From Rebecca billardiae RCC1528 (Eukaryota > Protista > Haptophyta): a stretch of DNA of 64,000 bases. Positions 777 through 41,744 of this stretch are shown piece after piece (the stretch's first letter is position 1; each line of letters begins with the position of its first letter). A model generated the notes under the pieces. That model did no database searches. It was not told the DNA's origin and was given only the letters and a program-made list of their open reading frames with translations. The stretch covers positions 620,001-684,000 of the forward strand of contig OZ251246.1 in assembly GCA_965240325.2 (NCBI GenBank), read 5' to 3'. A program made the translations under genes and the position numbers.

Positions 777-1049
777 GGTCCGCCTCCGACGGTCGGGCGG
801 TGGCCGGTTCGCAGACCCGGTTCGCCGCGGACAGCGCGTTGAGAACGTGCAGCAGGCTTCTTGCCCTTATCGCAGCGCGCCGATGCAGCAGCCCTCGTCG
901 TAGCAGACGATCCTCGTCGGGCGAGACGTGGCTTTTCGGCTATGGCACCAGAGCAGTGCTGAATCGTGCGCGCGCCAAGCAGGCGGCTTGCTCGCGATAG
1001 ATTACACACGTCACGCGACATGCTGCACGCAGCACCATCATTTACCCGG

Positions 1050-1148
1050 CGGCGCTACCATCGGCGACGGCTTCATGGGCGGTGACAGTTGGCGGGCGTC
1101 AATCTCGCCTGCCTGAGCTGTGTGCGTCTCTTATTCTTAGTAAACTGT
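1050..1148. repeat. 99-bp dispersed repeat, copy 1
   Basis: Near-identical to 41958-42056 (2 differences seen); its 3' half is also at 54370-54417. Confidence 0.9.
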
Positions 1149-1206
1149 TGCTGTTTATTACACTAATAAATCAGTACGCGTAATTACATACTGAGCTGCT
1201 ACGTAC

Positions 1207-1323
<117 letters not shown>

Positions 1324-2616
1324 CCGCGGTGCAGGGCGGAGCGCGCAGCGTGGAGCCCGCACCAGCGGGCCCGAACCACGTTTCAAAAAGATCTTTGATC
1401 AAGAAAAAAGGGACGGGGGGCGGCGGAAAAAAATTAAGGGACGGGGGGCGATTTTTAGGGCTGGCGGAGACCGAGTTTCGAGTTTTTGAGATCGCATTGA
1501 GAGGTCTATCAGGCCAAAAAAAACCGCGCCCAGCTGATTCCCTTAAGTAAAGTGCGATCTGGACGTCAGCTGGACGTGACATTAGTGTAACGGTTCGTTA
1601 CGAGCGAATCGTACTCGTCTTCCCGGATCGCGTGACGTCCGGACTGGGCCACATCCGGATCGTCGGAGGTGACGTGCCCCGGCACGATGGGCGATGGCGG
1701 ATATGCGGGACGGCGCCTGCACGTGCCTCCGGACCCGCCTCCCGCTTGCTGCTCACGCAGTCAGCTGCGACCGTGGCGCATGATCGCAGAAGCAGTGCCG
1801 GCAGTACGGCCTGCATCAGCTAGTGCCGCGCCGTCGTGGCGCGCGCGGTACGGTTGCGGCGTTGCGCGTTTGCAGCGCTCGCAGCTCGGCGACGGCACGC
1901 GCGTGCGGCTCAGGTGTGTCAAATGCGGTCTCGTCGGCGCGCTTTCGCCTGCCACCTCGTGCACCCGTGCCGCCAGTTTCATCGTCTTCATGAGGACTGC
2001 TGCTGCTGTCGCCATCCGCTCTCCATCACCCCGCCTTATCGTCCCCTGACGAGAAGGTTACATCCGCACACCTACTAGACGCTGATAGTAACACCTAGTA
2101 CGACGCGGAGGATAATCAGATTCGTCACTGGAGACAACGAAACATCCGAAACCTCAAACCACACACACACAAATATATATAAATTAATGTCAAAATATAA
2201 AGAACACAAAATTAAAAACAAAAATAAAATTCACCATTTACGCATGCCAACGGCATCATGATCATTTTTATTACTATCTAAATTTTATTTTGATAGTAAC
2301 ATTGTTATTACTGACTAGTATAATGACGTTGTTACTGCTATGTAGTTAGTAACATTGGTAACTATCTCGGTAGTGACACTGTCACTACTAAGCTAGATCT
2401 ATACTTCAATCTATACTTGCTATAATACTATACTTCAATCCCGGTCAGTCATCTCAGACATTGATAGATAGATATCCGACTCGAGTCGTCTCGGCGTCTG
2501 TCATTCTCTTGAAAGTTATTCTGGCGTCCGCCGGAACAGTCATCAGCATAGTCTAGCTGCTCTCTCTCTCGTCTCTAGCTAAGCTGCTACTAGAATCATT
2601 ATCATCATCATCATCA

Positions 2617-2649
<33 letters not shown>

Positions 2650-2776
2650 GTCGTCTGAATAGTAAAGCTTGTTACAAAGTACTTACGACTACTAAATATA
2701 CTAACTTTGGCGTGTATCTGTGAAGTCCTGTCTAACTTAAACTCTATGAGTCTACCCGTTCGACCGCCTATGCCCT

Positions 2777-3235
2777 ATCCGGACGGGGCATCGAGCTCGA
2801 GCCAGGCCCGCATCCAGACCTGCGTGTAAAGTTGTAAAGTGTAAAGTAGGTCCGGGATCCCAGCCGGACATGTCCGGCCAGTCCGACCGGACGCGTGCGG
2901 CCGGGCCGTGCCAGCTGCCACCGGGCCCGGCACTCTCCGGCGCCTCCGCCCAGCGCCGGCCGGTCGCCGGGGCGCCGCGGCCGAGAGGCAGTGCAAAGTT
3001 GTAAAGTGTAAAGTACATCCGGGAGCCAGGCCGGACCTATCCGGACAGCCGTCCGGCCACGCACGCGTGCGGGCTGTGCCGACGCGCCGCGCCGGCCGGC
3101 TGCCGGGCGCACGAGGGCGTGTATGACAGTGTGAAAAAGTAAATCCGGGCGCCTCCGGACGGGGCATCGCGCGCCGCGCAAGCTGCTTGGCCCAGCAACC
3201 CCCCGTAAAAGTTGTAAAGTGTAAAGTAAGTCCGG
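2777..3235 (-). repeat. Diverged inverted copies of the 198-bp satellite unit
   Basis: GTAAAGTTGTAAAGTGTAAAGTA..TCCGG-type motifs near 2826, 2993 and 3206, plus CCGGACATGTCCGGCCAGTCCGACCGGACGCGTGC, are the reverse complement of the array unit. Confidence 0.88.
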
Positions 3236-3624
3236 GGCTTTCGCGGGTCCAATCCGGGATCCCGCAGCCCGAGCGGCGGCGCGATGTTCGCCGCCATGGT
3301 CGATGGTGTTCGCAAGCACGTTCAGAAGCCGCCCGCCCTCGACGACGCGATCTGCACGTGCGCGCGTTGGTCAGAGCACACGCGTGACGTGGGTGAGTCG
3401 GGGGACTACCCACTACGAAGCAAAGTAGAGCGTGAAGCAAGGTAGATGTGTTTCCGCGTGCGCGCTCGGGCAGCTCTGCTGTGACCCCTCGGCCACGTCG
3501 TGATGTGTGCGTCCGCGCGCACGGCCACGCCAGCGTGGCCAGTGCGCTTCCTCTTCAACGACACCAACGAGCTCGCCCTGGCGCACAACGTTGGCAGCAG
3601 CGCCGTGACTACACGGCTGCTGGT

Positions 3625-4180
3625 GGTGCGCGCGTCCGGTTGGCCACACCCTCGTGACTCTGCGGCTGCGCGCAGAAGCAGCGCCACCGGCGTGCTGCTG
3701 CCTGCCGGCATGCTGGTGGCGCCCGCGCCCGCGCCGCCGCCGCCATTTTGTGACCGTCCCACAGTGCGCCCCGCTGCATGCGCCATGTGGCGCGCGTCCG
3801 GTTGGCCACAGCCTCGTGACTCTGCGGCTCTGCGGCTGCGCGCACAAGCAGCGCCACCGGCGTGCTGCCGCTGCCGGCATGCTGATGGCGCCCGCGCCCG
3901 CGCCGCCGCCGCCATTTTGTGACCTTCCCGCGCCGTGCGCCCCGCTGCATGCGCCGTCTGGGGCGCGTCCGGTTGACCGCAGCCTCATGACTCTGCGGCT
4001 GCGCGCGCAAGCATCGCCGCTGGCGTGCTGCCGCTGCTCGCATGCTGATGGCGCCCGCGCCCGCGCCGCCGCCGCCATTTTGTGACCTTCCCGCGCGGTG
4101 CGCCCCGCTGCATGCGCCGTCTGGGGCGCGTCCAGTTAGCCACAGCCTCGTGACTCTGCGTCTCTGCGGCTGCACGCGCA
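3625..4180. repeat. Tandem repeat, ~160-175-bp unit, ~3.5 copies
   Basis: Recurring GCGCGTCCGGTT...GTGACTCTGCGGCTGCGCG...CCGCCGCCATTTTGTGACC. Confidence 0.85.
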
Positions 4181-5373
4181 TCTACCGCGGCGGGCTGCGC
4201 CTGCTGTTCACGGCCAAGGCGGACGGCGACCCCCGTACATCCCCGCCGCGGTCGTTGCCACCGCCGGCGACGGCGTCGTGCGCTGCGAGTGGCTTGCGCG
4301 CCTGCCCGCGTGGCACGCCCTCCGCACCCGCACTGTGCCCGCGGCTTGGCCCACACGCGTGCACAACGAGGCGGTCGAATGGGCAGCGCGTGCGTAGACG
4401 GCACCTGCGCCGTCGGGTCAGCGCCGCCCGTGCGCCGGGCGTGCGCACCTTCCCGCCTCGCCAGCTGGCGCGCGAACCGCCCTCGCCGCGTGGCTAAACG
4501 AGCAGCTCGGCTCGCGCGGCGCGGGCGAGCCGATCAGTGCGCGCCCGGCGGCGCCGGGCGCTGGCCGCCGATTACGCGCGTGTACGCGGGGCGCTCGCCG
4601 GGTCTACTGGCGACGTGCTCGACGGCGAGTCGATGGTGTGACTACAAGCGCAGTGAGCACTGGCGGCGGATTGTCTTCTACTTCGCCAAGCTAGACGGCA
4701 TCGACCTCTGCTGCGTGGACGACGCGTGTGTCCACGCGCACGGCCGCGCAGGCGCAGCTGCCGTGCGCCTTCGTGGCTTCCTTTTGACGGTGCCGACGGG
4801 CTCGCCCCCTCACCACGCGTGGCCTGCGCGGCCGTGCAGCGCAGGCACGGTGGCTCGCGCGGCAAGGCGCCGGTTGCGCGCTCGCAGCAGTTTGCAGCCC
4901 TCCGGCGCGCGGCGTTTGCTGCAGCGCCGTGACCACGCGGCTGTGGGCCGCGCCACTGGTGCTGCTGGCCGCCGCGGCCATGCCGCCGCCGCCATGATAC
5001 GACCTTTTCGCGCTGTGCGCCCCGCTACACACAGCATGCGTGGACGACCGCGCTGCCCCTCGCGCCAAATGGCGCCCAGCAATACGGATGCGCACTGCAC
5101 ACTGCGTGCAGCGGGTTGAACGGCCCTGGCTGTGGCGTGCAACGTGCGCCGTAGAGGCGTGACTCGCCAGCCCGCGGCGGGCGTAGCGCGCGCACGCACG
5201 GGCGAGCAGCACTACTGCGTGTTGCTCAGCCGCGCCCGCGCCGCGCCATCGGTAGGTGGTGGCGCCCTCGACCGGCATCGAATCGCCCTCCCTCACCTAC
5301 CTCCCTCGCCCGGGCGGGTCGATCGCGGGCGCCGGCATCGCGATCCAAATCGCGTCCGGCCGCGTCGTCCCGC

Positions 5374-7340
5374 CCGGACTTACTTTACACTTTACAACTT
5401 TACAGGCCCTCTCGCGCCCGCGGCCGGCGGCGCGGCGGCCAGCACGCGTCCGGTCGGACTGGCCGGACATGTCCGGCTGGGCTCCCGGACCTACTTTACA
5501 CTTTACAACTTTACACGCCGGGCTGGGTGCTGGCCTGGCTCGTGCTCGATGCCTCGTCCGGACGTGCGCTCCCGGACCTACTTTACACTTTACAACTTTA
5601 CAGGCCCTCTCGCGCCCGCGGCCGGCGGCGCGGCGGCCAGCACGCGTCCGGTCGGACTGGCCGGACATGTCCGGCTGGGCTCCCGGACCTACTTTACACT
5701 TTACAACTTTACACGCCGGGCTGGGTGCTGGCCTGGCTCGTGCTCGATGCCCCGTCCGGACGTGCGCTCCCGGACTTACTTTACACTTTACAACTTTACA
5801 GGCCCTCTCGCGCCCGCGGCCGGCGGCGCGGCGGCCAGCACGCGTCCGGTCGGACTGGCCGGACATGTCCGGCTGGGCTCCCGGACCTACTTTACACTTT
5901 ACAACTTTACACGCCGGGCTGGGTGCTGGCCTGGTTCGTGCTCGATGCCCCGTCCGGACGTGCGCTCCCGGACTTACTTTACACTTTACAACTTTACAGG
6001 CCGCCCTCTCGCGCCCGCGGCCGGCGGCGCGGCGGCCAGCATGAGCACGCGTCCGGTCGGACTGGCCGGACATGTCCGGCTGGGCTCCCGGACCTACTTT
6101 ACACTTTACAACTTTACACGCCGGGCTGGGTGCTGGCCTGGCTCGTGCTCGATGCCTCGTCCGGACGTGCGCTCCCGGACCTACTTTACACTTTACAACT
6201 TTACAGGCCCTCTCGCGCCCGCGGTCGGCGGCGCGGCGGCCAGCACGCGTCCGGTCGGACTGGCCGGACATGTCCGGCTGGGCTCCCGGACCTACTTTAC
6301 ACTTTACAACTTTACACGCCGGGCTGGGTGCTGGCCTGGTTCGTGCTCGATGCCCCGTCCGGACGTGCGCTCCCGGACTTACTTTACACTTTACAACTTT
6401 ACAGGCCCTCTCGCGCCCGCGGCCGGCGGCGCGGCGGCCAGCACGCGTCCGGTCGGACTGGCCGGACATGTCCGGCTGGGCTCCCGGACCTACTTTACAC
6501 TTTACAACTTTACTACACGCCGGGCTGGGTGCTGGCCTGGTTCGTGCTCGATGCCCCGTCCGGACGTGCGCTCCCGGACTTACTTTACACTTTACAACTT
6601 TACAGGCCCTCTCGCGCCCGCGGCCGGCGGCGCGGCGGCCAGCACGCGTCCGGTCGGACTGGCCGGACATGTCCGGCTGGGCTCCCGGACCTACTTTACA
6701 CTTTACAACTTTACACGCCGGGCTGGGTGCTGGCCTGGTTCGTGCTCGATGCCCCGTCCGGACGTGCGCTCCCGGACTTACTTTACACTTTACAACTTTA
6801 CAGGCCCTCTCGCGCCCGCGGCCGGCGGCGCGGCGGCCAGCACGCGTCCGGTCGGACTGGCCGGACATGTCCGGCTGGGCTCCCGGACCTACTTTACACT
6901 TTACAACTTTACACGCCGGGCTGGGTGCTGGCCTGGCTCGTGCTCGATGCCTCGTCCGGACGTGCGCTCCCGGACCTACTTTACACTTTACAACTTTACA
7001 GGCCCTCTCGCGCCCGCGGCCGGCGGCGCGGCGGCCAGCACGCGTCCGGTCGGACTGGCCGGACATGTCCGGCTGGGCTCCCGGACCTGCTTTACACTTT
7101 ACAACTTTACACGCCGGGCTGGGTGCTGGCCTGGTTCGTGCTCGATGCCCCGTCCGGACGTGCGCTCCCGGACCTACTTTACACTTTACAACTTTACAGG
7201 CCCTCTCGCGCCCGCGGCCGGCGGCGCGGCGGCCAGCACGCGTCCGGTCGGACTGGCCGGACATGTCCGGCTGGGCTCCCGGACCTACTTTACACTTTAC
7301 AACTTTACACGCCGAAGTGGGTGGTGGCCTGGCTCATGGT
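5374..7340 (+). repeat. 198-bp tandem array (~10 units, 20 copies of a 31-bp TTTACA core)
   Basis: Units start at 5374, 5572, 5770, 5968, 6175, 6373, 6574, 6772, 6970 and 7168; each carries two CCGGAC(C/T)TACTTTACACTTTACAACTTTACA motifs separated by two alternating GC-rich linkers. Confidence 0.97.
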
Positions 7341-31116: not shown

Positions 31117-33591
31117 CGTCCCGGGTAGGGGAAGCCACATAATTCGCAGACCCAAAAGCAATTGTGCATAGATAAGTAGCACGCGGAGGCATAGATGAGT
31201 ACTTGATTACAGCGATTCTCCTCATGTATGACCGAGCTGCGAGCGCGTGGGGTACGAAAAAAGCCCTAATGAGGCGCAATCGCATGACTAGGTTCCGAAT
31301 CCGGCAGGTTTTGGCGGTCCACGAATCTTCGGCGGTAATATCAATAATCATTCTGCCCAGATTACATCTGGGCGAACATCGAGAACCGTCCTGAGCCACT
31401 TTGCCCTTTCGGCGGGTAAACGCACGTTTTTATTGCTCCAGAGTCCAGGCGGAAGGTGACAAATGTTTTAAAATGTACACCCTCGGATGAAACGTCTTAT
31501 CAAGAGTTCAAGACGACTTGCATGGCTTGACTACCGCCAAGTGCTTTTTGCGAAAGTCCGCACGGGGCGTGCGTTCGCTCCATGATGCGTCGAATGGATT
31601 CCGAACGTCCTAAAATTTCTCCGAAATTCTCACAGTCATCACGTACTCACATACACCTCTATTTTTAGCAGACAAGTCGTCAAGACCATGATCGCATAAT
31701 CAGGGCTCAATGTTCCATATATAGTAATCGAGTAGTATATACATTCAATATATATAGGTGAGAGCTTCGGTCATTTGCTTTCCAACGCGCATATGCGAAT
31801 ATGCACCTACCTACCCTTACATAAATAGCGGGTTTTCATGACATGGGAATATTTGATGGTGATCTTACACATGTTCCATATTCCGTCCGACCCCATCGCA
31901 CACCCCGGTAGGTAGCTCTTGATCACCATTAACGAACCGACAAAACACGCAAGGAAGCATACACAACGCTTGACGATCACGCAGGGGGCGGGGTAGTTAA
32001 AAGAATCGATTGTGATGCCGGAGTAGCAGGCAATACCACTAGCAATTAACGGAATGAATGAAGTTCAGAAGACAGTAGCTGCGCAGACCAATATATTTCG
32101 TGCCGAATGTGGGTACAGCAAAGCAAGAACTTGCCTATCGTAATCGTGGCACCGCCGCTGCGCCGCACGCTGGGCGTGGCAAGCACGCGGGCTTTGCAAT
32201 GCCCGCGAGTGGTGACGTTCGCAAGTAGCACTGATGGGTCCTTTGTCGGGCGTGGCGAGCGACACTGAGCAGCGGCGGTACGCACGGTCCCTTGCCACAC
32301 CCCGGTTCACCCCACCGAACCCAGTGCGACCAGATGAGTATGACACCCGGACTCTGGAGCGCACGGCGCACCTCTCCAGAGGTGGGCGGATGGGGCCTCG
32401 TGGCGTGTAATGGGCATGCCGCTGTCGTGTGAAAGTGCTCTAAACATCCGAACGCTTGCTCCCCGCGCAAGGCCCCGCGCCGCTATCTAGTGCAACCCAC
32501 TTGATGTGCCGACGTGCCGAGTTGTGCCGACGGTGCCGTGCCAGGCGGCCGACGGCAGTGCCACGCCTGCGACCTGCCGTGCTGCTGGGCTTTTGTCCGT
32601 CGAGATCACCGTCGCGCTTTGCTCACCGAAGCGGCCTGCGCGTGCAATTGCGTCATTAAGCCAGCACCTCTTGCGCGAGGAACACTGGCGTTTGGACGGC
32701 GCCCTCGGCCTCGGCACCGTGAGCCACTGACTGCATCCGGCTGGCAGGGCGGCGCCGGCGCCCCGGCCCCCGCGGGCTTGTTGCCTTGCTGTCCCGATGA
32801 CCGGCCCGGCGGCCCGTCCGCTAGCCCGGCTGCGGCGGTGCGGCGCCTCACGGTCCGAGATGTAATGTCAGCCACGACTCACATACTACTCATAGTCCCG
32901 ATGTGTCACTCGGCCAGTTAGCTGCTGACACTACCGACTCATAACTGTCTCATACAGTACGGCCGCGACGGCTTCAGAGTTGAACACGCCCATGGGCGGT
33001 GACAGAAGGTGCCAATCCGCCCGCATTGACGTGGCTGACTGAGGACTTCCTGATGATGTCAGTCCTGCGCTGTGTGTGTGCTTTCTGAGTCAGAGTCATC
33101 TGCTTTGGTCATCACAGCTCGAGCACTGTCAAGGCGGACATCCACACGTGCACCGAGCTCACCGACGACAACGTCTTGCGCGCCACGGAGGCGTTTGCCC
33201 GCGCGCACGGCGGACCGCGCGGTGATGATGCACGTCTGCAGTCTGCGGCGCCTGCCGCCTGCGCGCGGGCATGGCCGGTGCGCAGCGCGCCGCCCGTGAT
33301 TGACCCAACTCGCAGCTTTTGCGGAGCTGGCAAGGACGACTGCAGCTGTTTTCCGTCCGACCTGTCGTCGGGCGCTGGGGTCAGCCAGCGCTCCCCGACT
33401 CCCCGTTGGTCATGGGGAGGCCGCCAGCCGCTCCGCACGCGTTCGTGATCGGAGTTCTTGATCAGAGGCCACCGTCACTGATCGGATCGCCGATCGCCGA
33501 GGATCCGTCCCGAGATCCAGGCTCGCGAGCGGCGGCGGCATTCGATCCGAGCTGCACGCCACGGGGAACTCCCGGCGTGAACCTCGGCGCC

Positions 33592-35088
33592 ATGTTCGCC
33601 TCGCGCGTTGTCGCCGCCTCGTTGCTGCTGCTCGCGGCCCCGTGCCTCGGCCGCGGCAACGACGTGCCGACGTCGGGCGAGGTCGAGTCGGCCGCATGGA
33701 CCTACATCCTCTCCGCCGCCGCGCACATGCCCGAGTCGAGCCCCGAGTCGTTCTGCAAGACGGCGCTGATCAGCATCATCAAGTACTTCCCGGACGAGAA
33801 AGTTCGCGACCGGCTGATGAGCGTCGCGCAGTCGCCGGTGGTGGGTCAGAAGCTGCAGTGGCTCCCAACCATGGACGACTGCAACATCCTCCTCTGGTAC
33901 GTCCGCACCGCGGACCTCGTCGCCAAGGACGACGCGCCGCGCTACCTGCGAGACATGGGCCTGAGCTCGAGGCTCTTCGCGACCGCGCCGGATGAGGCGA
34001 CGGTGCAAGAGGTGCTCGCGTTCTGGACGAGCGCGACGCGCGCGAAGATCCTCTCCCACCTTGACGCCGCGTGGGTCGGGCACCACGTCGACCACGCCCA
34101 GCTCACCGCCGAGCGGCCGACGGTCGACCTCGCCGTCTACTCTGCGTGCCCGTATGGCATCGTCGCCGAGGAGGCGATGCTGGAGACGGTGCTGCCGCTC
34201 TTCGGCGACAAGGTGGAGTTCACGGTGCGGTACATCGGGATGTCGCGCTTCGACGGGCCCAACGGCACGGCGATCGACGAGCGGTACTGCGCCGCCGCGA
34301 AGAAGGTCTTCAAGGTCGAGCTGGGGCCGACCGAGCTGAACGTTTGCTCGATGCACGGCACGGGCGAGGCGAACGAGGACCTGAGGCAGATGGCGGTGCG
34401 CGAGCTGTACGGCGCGGAGACGCTGCACAAGTACATCCTCGCGTTCAACAAGCTCGACTGCGACGTGGAGAAGTACGACTCGTGCGCCGACAAGGCCGCG
34501 AAGCAGCTCGACCTCGACCCGAAGGCAATCGTGGCGAAGGCGGGCGAGCGGCTTCAGCAGTACGCGGCCGAGATGGCTGAGTACGAGGACACGGTGGGGC
34601 GGAAGGCGGTGGGGCCGGAGAGGCCGGGGCTGAGCTCGCCCACGCTGATCGTGAACGGCCTCCTCGGCGCCGTCGGCGCGCTCGAGCCCGCGGACTACGC
34701 GCGGCGCATCTGCTACTTCTTCGACGAGGCCTCGCGGCCCGCGGCGTGCGCGCCCGAGCTGCTCGGCGATCTGGAGGCGCAGGCGGCCAAGGCCGCGGAG
34801 GAGGCGGCGAGCGGTAAGGACGACGACAAGCGGGGAGGGCGGCGCGTGCCGAAGGGCGGCGCGTGCCTTCGGTCCGAGGTGCTGCCGAGCACCGTGCCGC
34901 GGCCCGACATGCCGCCCGGCTGGCGCCACGCCGGCGCGGCGCGCGAGGCCCAGCCCGGCACGGGCGCGCGCATGCTGCTCGCAGCTGTCGGCGCGGCCGG
35001 GCTGCCTATTGCCCTCGTCGCGGCCGTGCTCGGCCTGCGCGCGCGCACAAACAGCGGCGCCTCCGCGCGATCGCACCCGCTCGTGTGA
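33592..35088 (+). CDS. Secreted/membrane-anchored thioredoxin-fold (GILT/DsbA-like) protein
   Basis: Signal peptide MFASRVVAASLLLLAAPCLG; VDLAVYSACPYG, CSMHGTGEANEDLRQ and SSPTLIVNG motifs; C-terminal TM helix. Confidence 0.75.
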   Translation: MFASRVVAASLLLLAAPCLGRGNDVPTSGEVESAAWTYILSAAAHMPESSPESFCKTALISIIKYFPDEKVRDRLMSVAQSPVVGQKLQWLPTMDDCNILLWYVRTADLVAKDDAPRYLRDMGLSSRLFATAPDEATVQEVLAFWTSATRAKILSHLDAAWVGHHVDHAQLTAERPTVDLAVYSACPYGIVAEEAMLETVLPLFGDKVEFTVRYIGMSRFDGPNGTAIDERYCAAAKKVFKVELGPTELNVCSMHGTGEANEDLRQMAVRELYGAETLHKYILAFNKLDCDVEKYDSCADKAAKQLDLDPKAIVAKAGERLQQYAAEMAEYEDTVGRKAVGPERPGLSSPTLIVNGLLGAVGALEPADYARRICYFFDEASRPAACAPELLGDLEAQAAKAAEEAASGKDDDKRGGRRVPKGGACLRSEVLPSTVPRPDMPPGWRHAGAAREAQPGTGARMLLAAVGAAGLPIALVAAVLGLRARTNSGASARSHPLV

Positions 35089-35624
35089 TCGCGCGCCGCG
35101 GGCCCAGCAGTGATGGCGATGGCCGCCGCACCTCGGCGCGCGCTGGACAGCTGCGACGCTTCCGCCTGCCCCCGCCCTCCGGCGAAGCGGCTGACCGGCC
35201 AGTCCAGACCTGATCGATTGTGGACACAGGACAGCTCGCACTCGCGTCTCGGCTCTCGCCGAGATGAGCTGCCACCGGCTCGGGCCTTCGAGCGCGCGCT
35301 CTTCGGAAGCTCTTCTGCCTGCGCCCGCATGGCGCCCGCATGACGAGTCAATGATGACGCCCGTCAGCAGACCGCCAGCACGGCCAGGCACCGCCAGAGG
35401 GGCCCGCCGGGCCCCGGTGATTGCCCGGACTCCGGGCCCGAAGGGCAGCGAGCTCGTCGTGATCGTGAGCCGCACGCCGTGATCGTGATCGGGCGCCGGC
35501 CGTGCCGCAATAACGCGGCGGTGATGACTGCGAGTAGTGTCGTCCGAATGCTGACGGACCCGGTGTCATCGGGACGGACATTACTATTTACTCGTCGGGA
35601 GTATAACGACAGCATATATATGAG

Positions 35625-35626
<2 letters not shown>

Positions 35627-35666
<40 letters not shown>

Positions 35667-35668
35667 CA

Positions 35669-35714
<46 letters not shown>
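35627..35714. repeat. (TA)n microsatellite (interrupted)
   Basis: Directly visible. Confidence 0.97.
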
Positions 35715-35717
<3 letters not shown>

Positions 35718-38349
35718 AGTGCAGGATTGGAATTTTCCGTGACGCTTCGGACGGTCCGCAGCTCGAGTCAGCGAATCCGGTCTCGGCCGGACAGTGGAAC
35801 TCGGGTGGAAGCCGCGACTTCGCGGCGGACGGAGCCTCAAACGAGCGGTGCCTCGGCTCGCGGCGCGATCTACTCGGCGAAGACCGACGAGGCTGCTCGC
35901 GGGCCCGACTATGCGTCGACGCGGGCTGGGGTCGTCTTCCGCGTGGCGCTGGGCAAGTTCCTCGCCGCCCTGACGGGTGCTCTCCTTTCGCCCTCACGGC
36001 GCGCGCGGTGCGTTTCGCGCCAGCTTCTTGCATGCGCCGCCCGCGGTTGCGCCCGAGCCTGATGCTTCAGTCGACACGGCAGGTGGCTCGCGCAGGGTGG
36101 GATTGTGTGCGGGTGCCGCTGGCGGTGCGTCTCACCCTCCTGAAATTGTGTGGGAGGCTGTGACATTGCACGCGTACACCCCGCCACGCCCGCGGCCCGC
36201 CCGCGCAAACGCCGCGCCGCGCAGTTGTCTTTGACCTCGAGCGAGCCTGAGGCGTGGAGGCGACCGACGGCGGGGTGCGACTTGCCCACCGACCCGAGCC
36301 GCATCACCCAGCGCAGCCTCGCCCGCGACGACGCTTCGCCTGGCTGCCACTGCTCAGCCGCGTGCAAGGCGGGCTGGGCGACGTCTTTGCCGAGCGCGGC
36401 TGCAGCGCAGCACGCGAGAGGCTGGAGCGCCATGACGCGGATGGCGGAGCGGGCTTTGGGCTGGCTGGCATGAGCCGCCAGGCTGTACCGTCCGCGCAGA
36501 TCGCGCTCGGCCCGGCCGCAGCCCTCCTGAGCGCGCGCCTCAGAGCTGAGACTGATCACGTGCACGCGCACAAGCCACACTGCCGTGGCTGTGTCGAGCA
36601 GCTGCGTGTGCTCGAGGCGCGGCGCTCGCACGGGCCACGCGGGCGCAGCGGGTGCGCGCAGCTGGCGCACGCAGTGCCACGTCCTGCCGCGCCAGTTTGG
36701 CGGCCGTCCGCCCCCCCGAGCTCGAGTTCTGCGCGCTTTGCGACGGCGCGGCCGGCCGCGCCCATCTTCATGCTTGGGCACGCCAGCATGGCCGCCGCCG
36801 GGCCTGCTGCGCGCGCCGAAGCTGGAGGGCGGAGGAGGGCGCTGGGCTGCTCCTACGGCGTGCTGCAGCCCGGGCAGGCTTTTCCGCGGCGCGGCGAGGC
36901 CGTCGCGCCTGCTCGCCGCCGTCGAGTCGCCCGTGCTGAGTGACCGTCGGCCGCATGTGCTCGGCGGCACCGCAGGCAGGCGTCCCATACCAGTGTGCTC
37001 GAGCCGCTGCGCGCACCCAAGGCGAGCTGCTCGAGCGGGCTAGGTGGGCCCACGGAGTGCGCGCAGCTGGCGCACGCAGCCCCGCGTCATGGGGTGTCGG
37101 TTTGACGGTCGCCAGCCCCCGTGGGCTCGAGCTCTGTGCGCTTCACCACGGAGGTGCCGACGGCGCCCCGCGGCGCGCAACGGCGTGGCAGCATGGCCGC
37201 CGCCGGCGCCGCCGCACATGCCGCCGCTTACGGGCAGTCGAGAGCTTGGGGCAGCACCTACGGCATGCTGCAGCTCGGGCGGGCTCTGCCAGCCTGCTGT
37301 GGCGTGATCGCGCATTTTCCAGACCGTCGACTCGCCCGCGCTGCATATTTGTTTGCTGCGCGTGCTCGACGGCGCCGCTGCTGCCGCTACGGCCGCGCGT
37401 TGCTGCGTCGCGAGCGAGCCCGATGCGAGCTGAACGGCGGCGTGCTCATCGCTGCTGGCGCAGATGGGCGCGTCATGGTGGCCACGCACGATGCTGAGTG
37501 CTCGCGCGTGCCAGACGAGGCGCGTGCTCGCGCTGTGGCTCAATGTCCGGCAGTGCGCGTGGCAGGCCGCAGCTGCTCGACAACAGAACCAGCGGGCAGT
37601 GATCGGGCTGCGCGCGCGCAGCTGATGGCGGCGAACGAGCGAGCCCGCACCGCCGCGCAAGGGCTGGGCGACTGGCGCCGAGGTGGCGCGCACGTCGTCC
37701 GCTGCCGTTGGCATCGCGGCGGACGCTTCAAGCTCGTTCGGCCGGCGTGTTTTCTCCGACGCCCACCTGCGAGCGCTGCCGGCACCGTGCTCGGGCGTCA
37801 GTATCGGTGGGCTCGAGCACGCGTGGTGAGGCGCTCGGAGCGGTCGACGGCCATGATCGGGCAGCGCACGGTGGGCGCAGGCCACGCGCACGCCAGCGCC
37901 CCGCGTGGCGTGGCTTCACGGGGCGCAGCCACCAGGAGACTGTGCTGCGACGAGCTCGAGCGCGCTCGGGCGCCGCTGCTCTGCATTTTCCCGAAAAATC
38001 GGTTTTCGTGCCCTCGACCGGCGTTATGCCGCCGGGGTGGCCGCAGCTGCGCTCGGAGCAGCGCGCACGGGCACCGCCGTGTGCGCCCGCCCGCTTTCGC
38101 CGCCGCCGAGCTCGAGCACAGCGCTGCGCGGGGCTGCGTAATGCCAACGGCGCATGATTTTTTGCCCGCGCCGAGCGCGCGTCGGCGCGCGCAGCGCGCT
38201 CAGGTGTGGCCTGCTACCAAGGTCTGTGCCACGATTCGACGCGCCTATGGTGCGCCGAATTTAGGCGCACCGCTTCAGAATTGTCCGATGATTCGACTAG
38301 TGGTGCGGACAACTTAAAACGTCACCCTGAGCAGTTTTCCGGCACTGTG
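35715..38349. mobile_element. Non-autonomous DNA transposon with CACAGTG-initiated, block-conserved 46-bp TIRs
   Basis: Left end CACAGTG-17bp-GTGACG-9bp-GTCCGCA; right end (reverse complement) has the same blocks and the same spacing; ATAT on both flanks; internal degenerate ~370-400-bp repeats. Confidence 0.78.
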
Positions 38350-38645
38350 ATATACAGTCTCATCAGTGAGACTGAGCCTACTCCGTGCCGTACTGCCGTA
38401 ATCGTATACTATACTGCTGTCAACAGCGCGGGTGACCCGGACTGCGATGTCGTCGACGTCGTGACTCGTGTACGAGCGATGACGATGCTGCGCGCACTCG
38501 CACGACTTATTATTTGCCGTTCAGCGGATGATGACTGTCTGGCGGCGCAACGCCCAACGAGAATCATATAACGTCAGTCTGTGAGTCTGTGACTGTCGTC
38601 GGCTTTTCGAGCGCGGCGGCGGCGCGCCGCGCTTTGGCCCGGCGA

Positions 38646-41600
38646 TCACCACACGTCGCCGTCGGCGTCGACGGCATCCGCGCCCCCGTGCTCGTCAAAC
38701 TCGGAGGGCGACCCCCACTGCGTGTCTGCCGAGTCGGAGCCGTCGGCGCTCGAGCCGCCCACGATCTCGAGCGCCTCGAGCAGCTGCGTGGCGAGCGCGA
38801 GCAGCTGCGAGGCTGCGGGGCTGGCGCCGCCCCGCTCGCCGCCGCCGCCCGCGCTGCCGCCATCGAGGGGCGACTCGACGACGGCGGCAGCGGTGGCCGC
38901 CGCCGCGTCGCACTGCTGCGCGAGCGTCTCGGCGTGCGCGCCAAACGAGGAGTTCTCACTCATCCCGGCGCGCGCGCACGTCGCGCCCACGTTCGCCGCC
39001 AGCCGCAGCAGGGCGGGTCTCGGCGCGTGCGCAATGGCCAGATGCGCGCGCAGCGCCGCGCGCAGCACGATCGCCAGCGATCCGAGCAGAGGCGGGTGCG
39101 CGCCGATGAGCGCGCCGTGCGCGGAGGCGGTGGCGCTCAGCGCGTCGACGAGCTCGGACGCGAGCGTCGCGCCCGCGCTGCCGTTGCTCGCGAACGGCGT
39201 GTGCGCGGGCTTGCTCACGCCCGCCGCGCTCGCGGCCGCGTGTGACGCGAGCGCCGCCGCCGCGACAGCACCATAGTCATCGACCCGAGCGGTGATTAGT
39301 CTCGGCGAGGCGTCGAGCGCGGCGGCGAGGGCTGAGAGCGCGCGCAGCGCGGCGTCGGGCCGCTCGCAGCGGCGCGCGAGCACGCCCAGCGGCGCGAGCA
39401 TCCGCGCCGAGCCCTCGATGGCCGCGGGCTCGGCGAGCGCGCCGGCGGAGGAGGCGTTCACGATGGCGCGCACGGCGGAGACCGCCGCCAGCCGCGCGGC
39501 CGCGTCCCGAGCGCGTAGGGCGATGTCACCGAGCCACGCGCACGCGTTGGCGCCGTCGGCGGCGTCGACGGCGTCGTCGCCGGACGAGCCGAAAGCCCAC
39601 CAGCACGCGAGCAGCCACGGCGCGCGCCGCTCGAGCAGCGCCAGCGTCCACCACGCGTCGCGCGCGCGCGCGCCCGCCGCGGCCACGCTCGCGTGCGACG
39701 GCTGCGCCCACGTGCTGGCGCGCGCTCGCGCCTCCTCCTCGACAGCGACGTCCATCGCTTGGAGCGCGGCCTCGCGGCGCTGCATCAGCTCGGCTAGCAG
39801 CGCGCCGAAGCGCACGCCGCCCGCCTCGCTCATCTCGTACGGCGCGAGGCCGAGCGCCGCGCACCGCCCGTCGTACGAAAGTGCATGGGACAGGCCGCCG
39901 CCCGGCCGCGCCGGCGCCGCCGCGCTCGAGCCCGCCGCCGCGCCGGGCGGCGGCCGGGCTGGCTGCCTCGGCTCTGGCTGGGCTGCTGCCCCGTGGCCGG
40001 GCGGTGCCGCTGCGCCGCCGCCCTCCGCGCCCGCGCGCCGCCCGTCCGCGCCCGCCCACGCGTGCGCCGCGGGCTCCGGCTCGGCGCCCCTCGCCGCCGT
40101 GGCCGCGTCGTCTGTGCGCCACGCCTGCGCGAGCGCGTTCGCGGAAGCTTCCGGGCGCGCGGCGACGAGCGCAACCCACAGCCTCTCAGCCTGCGCACGC
40201 AGCGAGGCGCGGTCGCCGACGCCGCCGTCGTCCGCGCCGAGCAGCGCGAACGCCTCCGGGTCGGCCTCCCACTCCGCGAGCACCGCCGAGTTCGGCTCGA
40301 GCAGCGCAGGCAAGGCCGCGGCGAGCGCAGACGCAGTGGCGTCGGCCGACGCGGCCGCTGCGCCGCCGTCGGCCGCGCCGCCGCCCGCGCCGCGCCCGTC
40401 AGTCGATGCGGGCTCAAGCGCCCATGACGGCGCGGCGTGCGGCGCGGCGTGCGCCATCTCCGCCGCCGTCGCGAGCAGCCGCGCGAGCTGCAGCGCCATT
40501 CGTCGCGCCTCGTGCTCCGACGCCAGCGGCTCCGACTCCCCGCCGCCGCCGTCGCCTCGGCCCGCGGCCGCGCCCGGTTGCTCAGCAGTCGCGGCGGCGC
40601 GCGCGCCCGCGTCCGCGCCGTCCGCTCCCGCCGCGGCGGCGGCGAGTGCGCGCTGCCGCGTGGCCGAGGCGGAGCACGCGCAGAGCGGCGCGACGCGCAC
40701 GAGCGCGCACGCCGCGGGCTCGAGCGCCGCGCGCGCGCTCGCCGCCGCCACCGCAGCGCTCTCATCGCGCCCTGGCGCCCGGTCGCCTTCGACCGCCCGA
40801 ACTAACGTGACGAGGGCGCACTTGGCGAGCGAGCGGACGAGCCGCGCTCGGCGGTCGGTGAGGCGGCCGGTGGAGGCGATGGCGGAGAGCGCGGGCGCGA
40901 GGGCCGCGCACGCGCTGTCCACCATCGCGCTCGCCAGCCCGTCCGCCGCCGCCGCGGCGGGCGGCAGCGAAAGCACAGGAAGCACCGCGCGCGTGTGCAC
41001 GGTCGCGCGGTCTAGCAAAGGGCCCTCGACGGGCGCGCTCGCGGCCGAGGCGGCGGCGGCGAGCGCGGTGCGCCAGCGCTCGAGGAGGGAGGGGCCGAGG
41101 GAGCTCGCCGCGAGCGCGAGCGCGCCCGCCGCCCCGCGAAGCGTCGCGCCGCCCCCGCTCCCACCGCCGCCGCCGCCGCTCGCCGCAGCGCCCGCCGTGC
41201 CGCCCGCGCCGCCACCGTCGGGCGCGTCGGCGCGCGAGGTGTGGTGCAGCGCGAGGAGCTCCTTGAGCGAGCGGCGGAGCGCCGTGAGCGCGCCCTCCTC
41301 CGCATCGGGCGCGCTCGGCAGCGCCTCGTGCGCCACGCGCGCGCACAGCGCCCCGAGCATCAGCGCGTTGCCGCGCGCACTCGGAGGCTTGGTGTCTGCG
41401 TCTGCGAGCGCCGCATCCGCCCGCACGCACGCGGCGACAGTGGCCGCGGCGTGGGTGCGCGCGCGCGGATCGGGTGTGCCGAGGAGTTCAAACACGTGCG
41501 GTATCAACGCGGCGCGCTCCTCCGAGGAGAATGTCGCCCAGCACGTCGGCAGGCGCGCGCGCAGGCACGCGCTCGCCAGAAAGCGATCGGTCGCGTCCGG

Positions 41601-41744
41601 CGCGCCGCGCACGAGGCGGGCGAGCTCGGTGAAGAAAGGCACCGGCATCCGCTCCGCCTCATAGAGCGCCCGTTCGCCGTCGTGCCGCACCGCGGCATCG
41701 GCGCTCGCGGCCGCGCGGAGCGCCGCCGCCAGCGCCGCGTCCAT
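38646..41744 (-). CDS. Importin-beta family HEAT-repeat protein (importin-11-like, Ala-rich, divergent)
   Basis: IBN_N-like start (AVRHDGERAL..RFLASACLR..W); later WEADPEAF..LRAQAERLW and RRAPWLLACW resemble importin-11 blocks. Confidence 0.65.
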   Translation of the reverse strand: MDAALAAALRAAASADAAVRHDGERALYEAERMPVPFFTELARLVRGAPDATDRFLASACLRARLPTCWATFSSEERAALIPHVFELLGTPDPRARTHAAATVAACVRADAALADADTKPPSARGNALMLGALCARVAHEALPSAPDAEEGALTALRRSLKELLALHHTSRADAPDGGGAGGTAGAAASGGGGGGSGGGATLRGAAGALALAASSLGPSLLERWRTALAAAASAASAPVEGPLLDRATVHTRAVLPVLSLPPAAAAADGLASAMVDSACAALAPALSAIASTGRLTDRRARLVRSLAKCALVTLVRAVEGDRAPGRDESAAVAAASARAALEPAACALVRVAPLCACSASATRQRALAAAAAGADGADAGARAAATAEQPGAAAGRGDGGGGESEPLASEHEARRMALQLARLLATAAEMAHAAPHAAPSWALEPASTDGRGAGGGAADGGAAAASADATASALAAALPALLEPNSAVLAEWEADPEAFALLGADDGGVGDRASLRAQAERLWVALVAARPEASANALAQAWRTDDAATAARGAEPEPAAHAWAGADGRRAGAEGGGAAAPPGHGAAAQPEPRQPARPPPGAAAGSSAAAPARPGGGLSHALSYDGRCAALGLAPYEMSEAGGVRFGALLAELMQRREAALQAMDVAVEEEARARASTWAQPSHASVAAAGARARDAWWTLALLERRAPWLLACWWAFGSSGDDAVDAADGANACAWLGDIALRARDAAARLAAVSAVRAIVNASSAGALAEPAAIEGSARMLAPLGVLARRCERPDAALRALSALAAALDASPRLITARVDDYGAVAAAALASHAAASAAGVSKPAHTPFASNGSAGATLASELVDALSATASAHGALIGAHPPLLGSLAIVLRAALRAHLAIAHAPRPALLRLAANVGATCARAGMSENSSFGAHAETLAQQCDAAAATAAAVVESPLDGGSAGGGGERGGASPAASQLLALATQLLEALEIVGGSSADGSDSADTQWGSPSEFDEHGGADAVDADGDVW

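Follow-up and report, generated by a model that had tools for sequence, protein, structure and literature searches.

The stretch analysed here, which we call the window, comprises 64,000 nucleotides of contig OZ251246.1 (positions 620,001 to 684,000 of the forward strand; GenBank assembly GCA_965240325.2) from the haptophyte alga Rebecca billardiae RCC1528. At 35715-38349 on its plus strand lies a complete non-autonomous DNA transposon of 2,635 bp, one of about 60 copies in the genome. The plus strand read from 35715 gives the left end as CACAGTG, 17 nt, GTGACG, 9 nt and GTCCGCA, and the minus strand read inward from 38349 gives the identical three blocks at identical distances. The spacer sequences of the two ends are unlike each other. 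An initial annotation of this DNA had described the ends in just these terms, with spacers that mostly differ, and the sequence reads exactly so.

The end signals are 46 bp long, with GTGACG at positions 25-30 and GTCCGCA at positions 40-46. On the left, the terminal heptamer (35715-35721), the putative cleavage site, is followed on the plus strand by inner block 1 (35739-35744) and inner block 2 (35754-35760). On the right, all three lie on the minus strand: the heptamer at 38343-38349, block 1 at 38320-38325 (CGTCAC on the plus strand) and block 2 at 38304-38310 (TGCGGAC on the plus strand). The heptamer, the TGACG of block 1 and the whole of block 2 are invariant in all four ends of this element and of a 6.2-kb coding relative described below. 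Neither inner block is repeated inside the 2.6-kb element; each occurs once per end, and the element is thus without CACTA-like subterminal arrays. Because block spacing is equal at both ends, no rule resembling the 12/23 rule is evident.

On its left the transposon adjoins a (TA)n microsatellite, interrupted by a few bases (35622-35714), at the microsatellite's 3' edge; the position at the edge of such a tract had been noted at first reading. This AT-rich target has a G+C content of 0.45-0.49, against 0.7-0.8 in the surrounding DNA. Comparison of the dinucleotides at 36 copies and at an empty site identifies the target-site duplication as the 2-bp AT at 35713-35714 on the left and 38350-38351 on the right. 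The ATAT that was first reported at both flanks is present, but it is not the duplication; the longer match arises because the insertion is into a (TA)n microsatellite. A target duplication of 4 or 5 bp is ruled out by the same 36 copies and empty site.

The 2.6-kb element is non-coding. There is no codon periodicity across it, the genuine exons of this genome having a third-position G+C of 0.95-1.0, and a Pfam search of its eight open reading frames (ORFs; 149-398 codons) returned no family. ORFs of this size are the chance expectation at 72% G+C. These results, together with the roughly 60 near-identical paired copies, uphold the earlier view that the element is non-autonomous and contains no transposase. 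Its internal 2 kb (36180-38154) is passenger DNA without similarity to the 6.2-kb relative and without coding signal. Two diverged direct repeats of about 290 bp, 73% alike, lie within this passenger DNA on the plus strand (36590-37285, the units at 36590-36880 and 36994-37285, or element positions 876-1166 and 1280-1571), and they are present in every copy (self-matches). Long GC-rich ORFs at 33319-35475 and 38646-41744 border the insertion, which occupies the AT-rich gap between them; a Pfam search assigned neither ORF to a family.

Copy number and target sites

We searched the 72-Mb assembly for the end pattern CACAGTGCNGGAN12GTGACGN9GTCCGCA and obtained 119 matches (59 + 60), against none (0 + 0) for the reversed pattern that served as control, a number well above what chance would give. 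Nearly all matches pair up, facing inward, about 2.63 kb apart. The initial annotation had proposed this search and had staked its reading on the existence of other paired copies, of which there are about 60. The family is young and recently amplified. A DNA search with the whole element scored 40 full-length genomic copies at 97-100% identity, and the median pairwise divergence among 27 aligned copies is 0.3%.

Target duplications were read in 36 of the approximately 60 copies. The same dinucleotide stands on both sides of CACAGTG...CACTGTG in 34 of these 36; 12 different dinucleotides occur, TA being the commonest (11/34). One of the remaining copies has a 3-bp duplication and the other a mismatch. 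Matches longer than 2 bp at the flanks are confined to microsatellite targets, as in the window. On contig 1, a repeat that contains an insertion (3179914-3182546) has a paralog elsewhere that is uninterrupted, which provides a filled/empty pair. The filled site reads ...GCATCTG, then the element, then TGAAGTCATGA..., and the empty site reads ...gcatctg followed directly by AAGTCATGA..., a comparison that fixes both the borders of the element and the 2-bp duplication. Over 34 distinct insertions, the mean A+T content of the 20-nt flanks is 67%, whereas the window is 69% G+C (genome approximately 69-70%). The family thus lands in AT-rich islands.

The 34 distinct flank pairs are spread over more than 20 contigs. 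Three copies on contig 10 (G000:C10:772460, 809683 and 831096) have identical flanks and were therefore spread there by segmental duplication; the duplicated segment is recent, 20-40 kb long, and carries the 2.6-kb element along.

Two other loci deserve mention. The copy at G000:C18:914462-917935 contains a nested insertion of about 821 bp (locus positions ~3590-4419), with a 9-bp duplication GACTCGAGC and inverted termini CAGGGATGC..., which is probably a Mutator-like miniature element. From G000:C1:387831 onward there is a right-type end (96.6% identity over 88 bp). The sequence beyond it is unrelated, and within 9.5 kb no second terminus occurs; this is either a truncated copy or another family using the same end.

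A coding relative and the predicted fold of its protein

Unpaired and variant ends were extracted and compared with the 2.6-kb element, and the genome proved to contain one coding relative, a 6,204-bp element on contig 14 (G000:C14:815838-822041). It matches the 2.6-kb element only at element positions 1-55, 161-465 and 2441-2635, with 84-90% identity at corresponding tips and 80% over positions 161-465. The 6.2-kb element has the same heptamer and the same two inner blocks in the same register, and is flanked by a 2-bp AT duplication. The end-specific spacer sequences are also kept between the two elements, which is no more than common descent requires.

On its minus strand, the 6.2-kb element carries a gene made up of three coding stretches, recognised by codon periodicity and a third-position G+C of 0.95-1.0: an N-terminal domain (~5376-6126 of the 6.2-kb locus), a coiled-coil segment (~3200-3900) and a core ORF of 795 codons (778-3165). 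A candidate 46-nt GT..AG phase-0 intron (3223 to 3178) would link the coiled-coil stretch to the core. Transcripts that include the C-terminal half of the core begin with an N-terminus homologous to the N-terminal domain, which argues that the stretches form one protein; the exons were searched one by one. No RAG2-like second gene was seen. Of the core, the genome has a single intact copy; contig 7 carries a 94%-identical fragment containing a stop codon, and contig 13 a 23%-identical paralog. The paralog lies within a 1,617-codon ORF in a subtelomeric region adjoining CCCTAA repeats (G000:C13:2816000-2825999). It is bracketed by CACAGTG at 1234 (plus strand) and 6948 (minus strand), in the correct orientation, and a GTCCG block stands at position 39 of its 3' end. 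The locus probably belongs to the same superfamily, as an old member.

The N-terminal exon contains an AT-hook-like motif, GKRGRPR (6150-6190 of the 6.2-kb locus, minus strand). The nonamer-binding domain of RAG1 contains GGRPR, which this motif recalls, and the motif may be linked to the choice of AT-rich targets. The N-terminal domain may be an analogue of the nonamer-binding domain, but its AlphaFold2 model was poor (predicted local distance difference test score, pLDDT, 58.6; 5 sequences), and no fold matched it.

As the element in the window lacks a gene, fold was assessed on the protein of the 6.2-kb relative. AlphaFold2, run on a 27-sequence alignment, gave a model with a mean pLDDT of 76.5, a predicted template modelling score of 0.73 and 353 residues at 90 or above. 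The top 48 Foldseek matches in the PDB are RAG1 or HzTransib (best E 6e-7), followed at rank 49 by the amphioxus RAG1-like protein BbRAGL (E 1.4e-3); the first unrelated protein is the P element transposase (E 0.045). VIA-align matches model residues 42-764 to RAG1 residues 460-1007 with a Z of 18.0 (463 residues, 4.6 Å). Its Z scores are 15.2 for BbRAGL and 14.5 for HzTransib, and for the next folds 10.0 (P element), 8.2 (ISCth4) and 6.9 (Hermes). A search of 48,161 representative chains that was independent of Foldseek left this order unchanged. On the AlphaFold2 model, the contig-14 protein thus has a core fold of the RAG1/Transib type. The initial annotation had placed the transposase elsewhere in the genome, and the contig-14 element, with its homologous ends and predicted fold, bears this out.

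A two-sequence profile, run exhaustively with HMMER against 1.84 billion representative proteins, recovered no more than 25 relatives at E <= 0.001. The relatives whose source is named belong to the haptophyte Pavlovales sp. CCMP2436; the rest are MMETSP, ENA and JGI records, among them MMETSP transcripts and marine metagenome sequences. PDB sequence searches returned only low-complexity matches and weak C2H2-like matches around the CxxC...H region. A word-index protein search with the core found nothing, nor did one with the 27-sequence alignment, which also missed known members and is therefore uninformative. A genome search with PF02992 and PF12940 gave no match, an equally uninformative result since control genomes gave none. 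In a metagenome scan for related loci, 0 of 596 pattern matches were confirmed. Hidden Markov model profiles had been proposed at first reading as a test of the longest copies. A longer coding relative was found, but RAG1/Transib and CMC (CACTA/EnSpm, Mirage, Chapaev) profiles were silent on its protein. The language-model neighbours of the protein are RAG1 clusters (0.91-0.93) and, with these excluded, DUF1280 (0.93), Transposase_21 (0.89) and Plavaka (0.85). DUF1280 is the Chapaev transposase family, which forms one clade with RAG1 (PMC3985635).

Residues conserved in the family are D161, D251, H298, C311xxC314, H349, H372 and N376, together with an invariant RE(D/Q)GQE at 695-700 (E696/E700). 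In the AlphaFold2 model, the first strand of the RNase-H sheet carries D161, the fourth strand has D251 at its end, CxxC is in a small hairpin, and RE(D/Q)GQE is at the start of a helix. D161, D251 and a glutamate of RE(D/Q)GQE would thus follow the usual Asp-Asp-Glu (DDE) layout, which suggests a catalytic role for them. In transcripts P0004, P0028 and P0029, which cluster with an NCBI protein of Pavlovales sp. CCMP2436, the conserved N-terminal domain runs straight into the CxxC region, and the portion bearing both putative catalytic aspartates is missing. These transcripts could represent deleted elements, splice variants or domesticated derivatives.

Placement of the family

We think it very probable that the window element is a non-autonomous cut-and-paste member of an undescribed algal lineage of the clade of CACTA/EnSpm, Mirage, Chapaev and Transib (CMCT), moved in trans by a DDE transposase of RAG1/Transib fold. 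Its family has what defines a non-autonomous transposon: no transposase gene, ends in common with a coding relative, and many copies each with its own duplication. The CMCT clade is characterised by CA..TG termini, 2-5-bp duplications, and C(2)C and H(3-4)H motifs (Kojima 2025, PMC12730594). The termini and duplication length of the 2.6-kb family fall within that definition, and likewise within the CAC... termini and 2-4-bp duplications of the CMC group. An orphan lineage of the CMCT clade is the defensible classification, as support reaches the broad clade only and not membership in Transib, Chapaev or CACTA. With 2 rather than 5 target bases duplicated, the family is best seen as a side branch within a known group of transposons, not as an ancestor of RAG. 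The first reading, which had offered a Transib/RAG-like or CMC family, therefore stands at the level of the broad clade. Its narrower terms are not supported, there being no RAG1, Transib or CACTA profile match, no A-rich nonamer and no 12/23 asymmetry.

The contig-14 gene is the only intact candidate driver gene in the genome. Its transposase, probably a dimer given the coiled-coil segment and the RAG1-like dimerisation region, would pair both ends of 2.6-kb copies in trans. The RNase-H-like core, with D161, D251, the glutamate of RE(D/Q)GQE and the CxxC zinc site, would cut at the heptamer border. Other parts of the protein would read the two inner blocks, as RAG1 reads heptamer and nonamer, and the N-terminal domain is perhaps the surface that reads GTGACG and GTCCGCA. 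By analogy to RAG and Transib, cleavage may pass through a hairpin on the flanking DNA. The excised element would then be inserted with a 2-bp stagger, preferring AT-rich DNA such as (TA)n.

Several observations weigh against this placement and this mechanism. At E values up to 10, Pfam gave no match for the core, the contig 13 paralog or any of the 27 family members; hmmscan at that threshold found no RAG1 family among them, and PF06918, PF06869, PF02992 and PF18759 matched no member of the 27. The strict H(3-4)H motif is not conserved, and H380x3H384 is present in the contig-14 protein only as a non-conserved feature. Between the ends of the 6.2-kb element and those of the 2.6-kb family the divergence is 10-20%. 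Since the family's internal 2 kb is unrelated to the 6.2-kb element, the family is not a simple deletion derivative of it. No transposition event, excision footprint or polymorphic site of the 2.6-kb family was observed, and we only infer that the contig-14 gene mobilises it in trans. Finally, RAG1, Transib and RAG1-like proteins are the sole representatives of the CMCT clade among the solved structures searched. With no solved CMC structures to compare, a RAG1-like fold speaks for clade membership, not for closeness to Transib.

The rival explanations differ in how much of this evidence they can accommodate. Segmental duplication, or an artefact of assembly, would account for copies without transposition, and the three contig 10 copies with identical flanks are of that kind. 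As an explanation of the family it is exceedingly improbable, with distinct flank pairs for 34 insertions on more than 20 contigs, a separate 2-bp duplication bounding each insertion, and one filled/empty pair. It is possible, though doubtful, that the family is a divergent member of a named CMC lineage, whether Chapaev, Mirage, or fungal ESTA or PlavakaA with 2-bp or TA duplications. ESTA makes TA duplications and matches RAG1 in HHpred, PlavakaA makes 2-bp duplications (PMC12730594), and clusters of DUF1280, the Chapaev family (PMC3985635), and of Transposase_21 score 0.93 and 0.89 with the contig-14 protein. The CAC...GTG termini and a 2-bp duplication that is most often TA would also suit such an origin. 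However, PF06918, PF06869, PF02992 and PF18759 match 0/27 members, and CACTA-style subterminal repeats are absent. Chapaev duplications are 3-4 bp long, PlavakaA has TGT..ACA termini, and the 25 relatives among 1.8 billion representatives have named sources in Pavlovales sp. CCMP2436 alone.

Membership in the Transib superfamily proper, the RAG1 lineage, with the duplication shifted from 5 to 2 bp, seems to us rather unlikely. The termini are the exact heptamer of the recombination signal sequence (RSS), the entire RAG1 core (460-1007) is matched at Z 18.0, and the best language-model neighbours include RAG1 clusters. The length of the duplication does not decide the matter either way, because a 2026 preprint reports 3-bp and TA duplications inside a bona fide Transib lineage (10.64898/2026.08.26.747230); a 2-bp duplication thus does not exclude Transib affinity. 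Yet no Pfam RAG1 model matches, and Chapaev-type clusters score as high as RAG1 in the language model. The 2-bp duplication, the AT-rich targets, the lack of an A-rich nonamer and the lack of 12/23 asymmetry are the opposite of what is described for Transib (PMC1131882). Nor is the fold specific to Transib, since other CMCT lineages, ESTA among them, match RAG1 in HHpred too (PMC12730594).

The orphan CMCT lineage that we favour could take a more specific form, namely a deep sister lineage of Transib and RAG1 in haptophyte algae in which the exact RSS heptamer survives, as does a heptamer-spacer-block signal for a RAG1-type core to read. We put this forward tentatively and would not expect it to prevail. 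If true, RAG1-like recombinases would extend well beyond the animal and fungal hosts known for Transib, and the family would offer a young, probably still active system in which to study how signal architecture and stagger (2 versus 5 bp) evolved before V(D)J recombination.

The copy in the window is an ordinary passenger transposon, and the interest lies in its family. The candidate driver enzyme escapes every sequence profile tried, yet its predicted fold is RAG1-like, and the ends of the family carry the exact V(D)J heptamer. The host, moreover, is a GC-rich alga, distant from the animals on which work on Transib and RAG has been done. With about 60 copies, 0.3% divergence and one intact master gene, this is a candidate active transposon that could serve for insertional mutagenesis in such algae. 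Its preference for AT-rich islands in a genome of about 70% G+C is a clue to target choice by such enzymes.

Comparison with known systems

The family resembles Transib and RAG1 (HzTransib, amphioxus ProtoRAG/BbRAGL, vertebrate RAG1) in several respects. The heptamer begins with CAC and, in the 2.6-kb family, equals the RSS consensus CACAGTG exactly; each end has a bipartite structure, with a heptamer, a variable spacer and a conserved inner block. The model of the contig-14 protein spans the RAG1 core from the dimerisation domain to the C-terminal domain, and the protein has a putative DDE triad with a CxxC zinc motif past the second aspartate. Canonical Transib elements make 5-bp duplications in GC-rich targets, and in their 38-bp end a 23-bp spacer separates CACAATG from an A-rich nonamer (PMC1131882). 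The 2.6-kb family is not a canonical Transib: its duplication is 2 bp rather than 5 bp, its targets are AT-rich rather than GC-rich, and it has two GC-rich blocks, at 17 and 9 nt and the same at both ends, instead of an A-rich nonamer at 12 or 23 nt. It differs further in that neither a RAG1 nor a Transib sequence profile matches the contig-14 protein, and that the gene was seen without a RAG2-like partner. The host, too, is a haptophyte alga, not an animal or a fungus; to our knowledge, Transib has been found in animals and fungi only.

The likeness to the CMC group consists of CAC...GTG termini, a short duplication within the 2-4-bp range and a predicted DDE core with C(2)C, and in the language model the next-nearest neighbours are clusters of Chapaev type (DUF1280) and of EnSpm type. 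Mirage makes duplications of 2 bp and Chapaev of 3-4 bp. In contrast to these groups, the family shows no match to PF02992, PF06869 or PF06918 and no CACTA subterminal arrays, and its duplication is shorter than that of Chapaev. Among fungal CMCT elements, ESTA and PlavakaA (PMC12730594) share 2-bp or TA duplications with the family, and the ESTA transposase, like the contig-14 protein, is recognisable only by remote similarity to RAG1. These elements, which we compared with the 2.6-kb family by description only, are fungal and often accompanied by a TET/JBP gene. PlavakaA termini are TGT..ACA, and ESTA duplications are strictly TA, whereas the 2.6-kb family has 12 different dinucleotides.

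Kodama and Nozomi, of a Drosophila Transib lineage (bioRxiv 10.64898/2026.08.26.747230), offer a parallel in population structure, with one or few autonomous copies and a strongly amplified short non-autonomous derivative. Kodama is a precise internal deletion of its master, whereas the internal 2 kb of the 2.6-kb family is unrelated to its candidate master. In both cases duplication length varies inside a RAG1-like setting. With the Rebecca family the CMCT clade gains a lineage, and the uncoupling of duplication length from a RAG1-like fold gains a further example.

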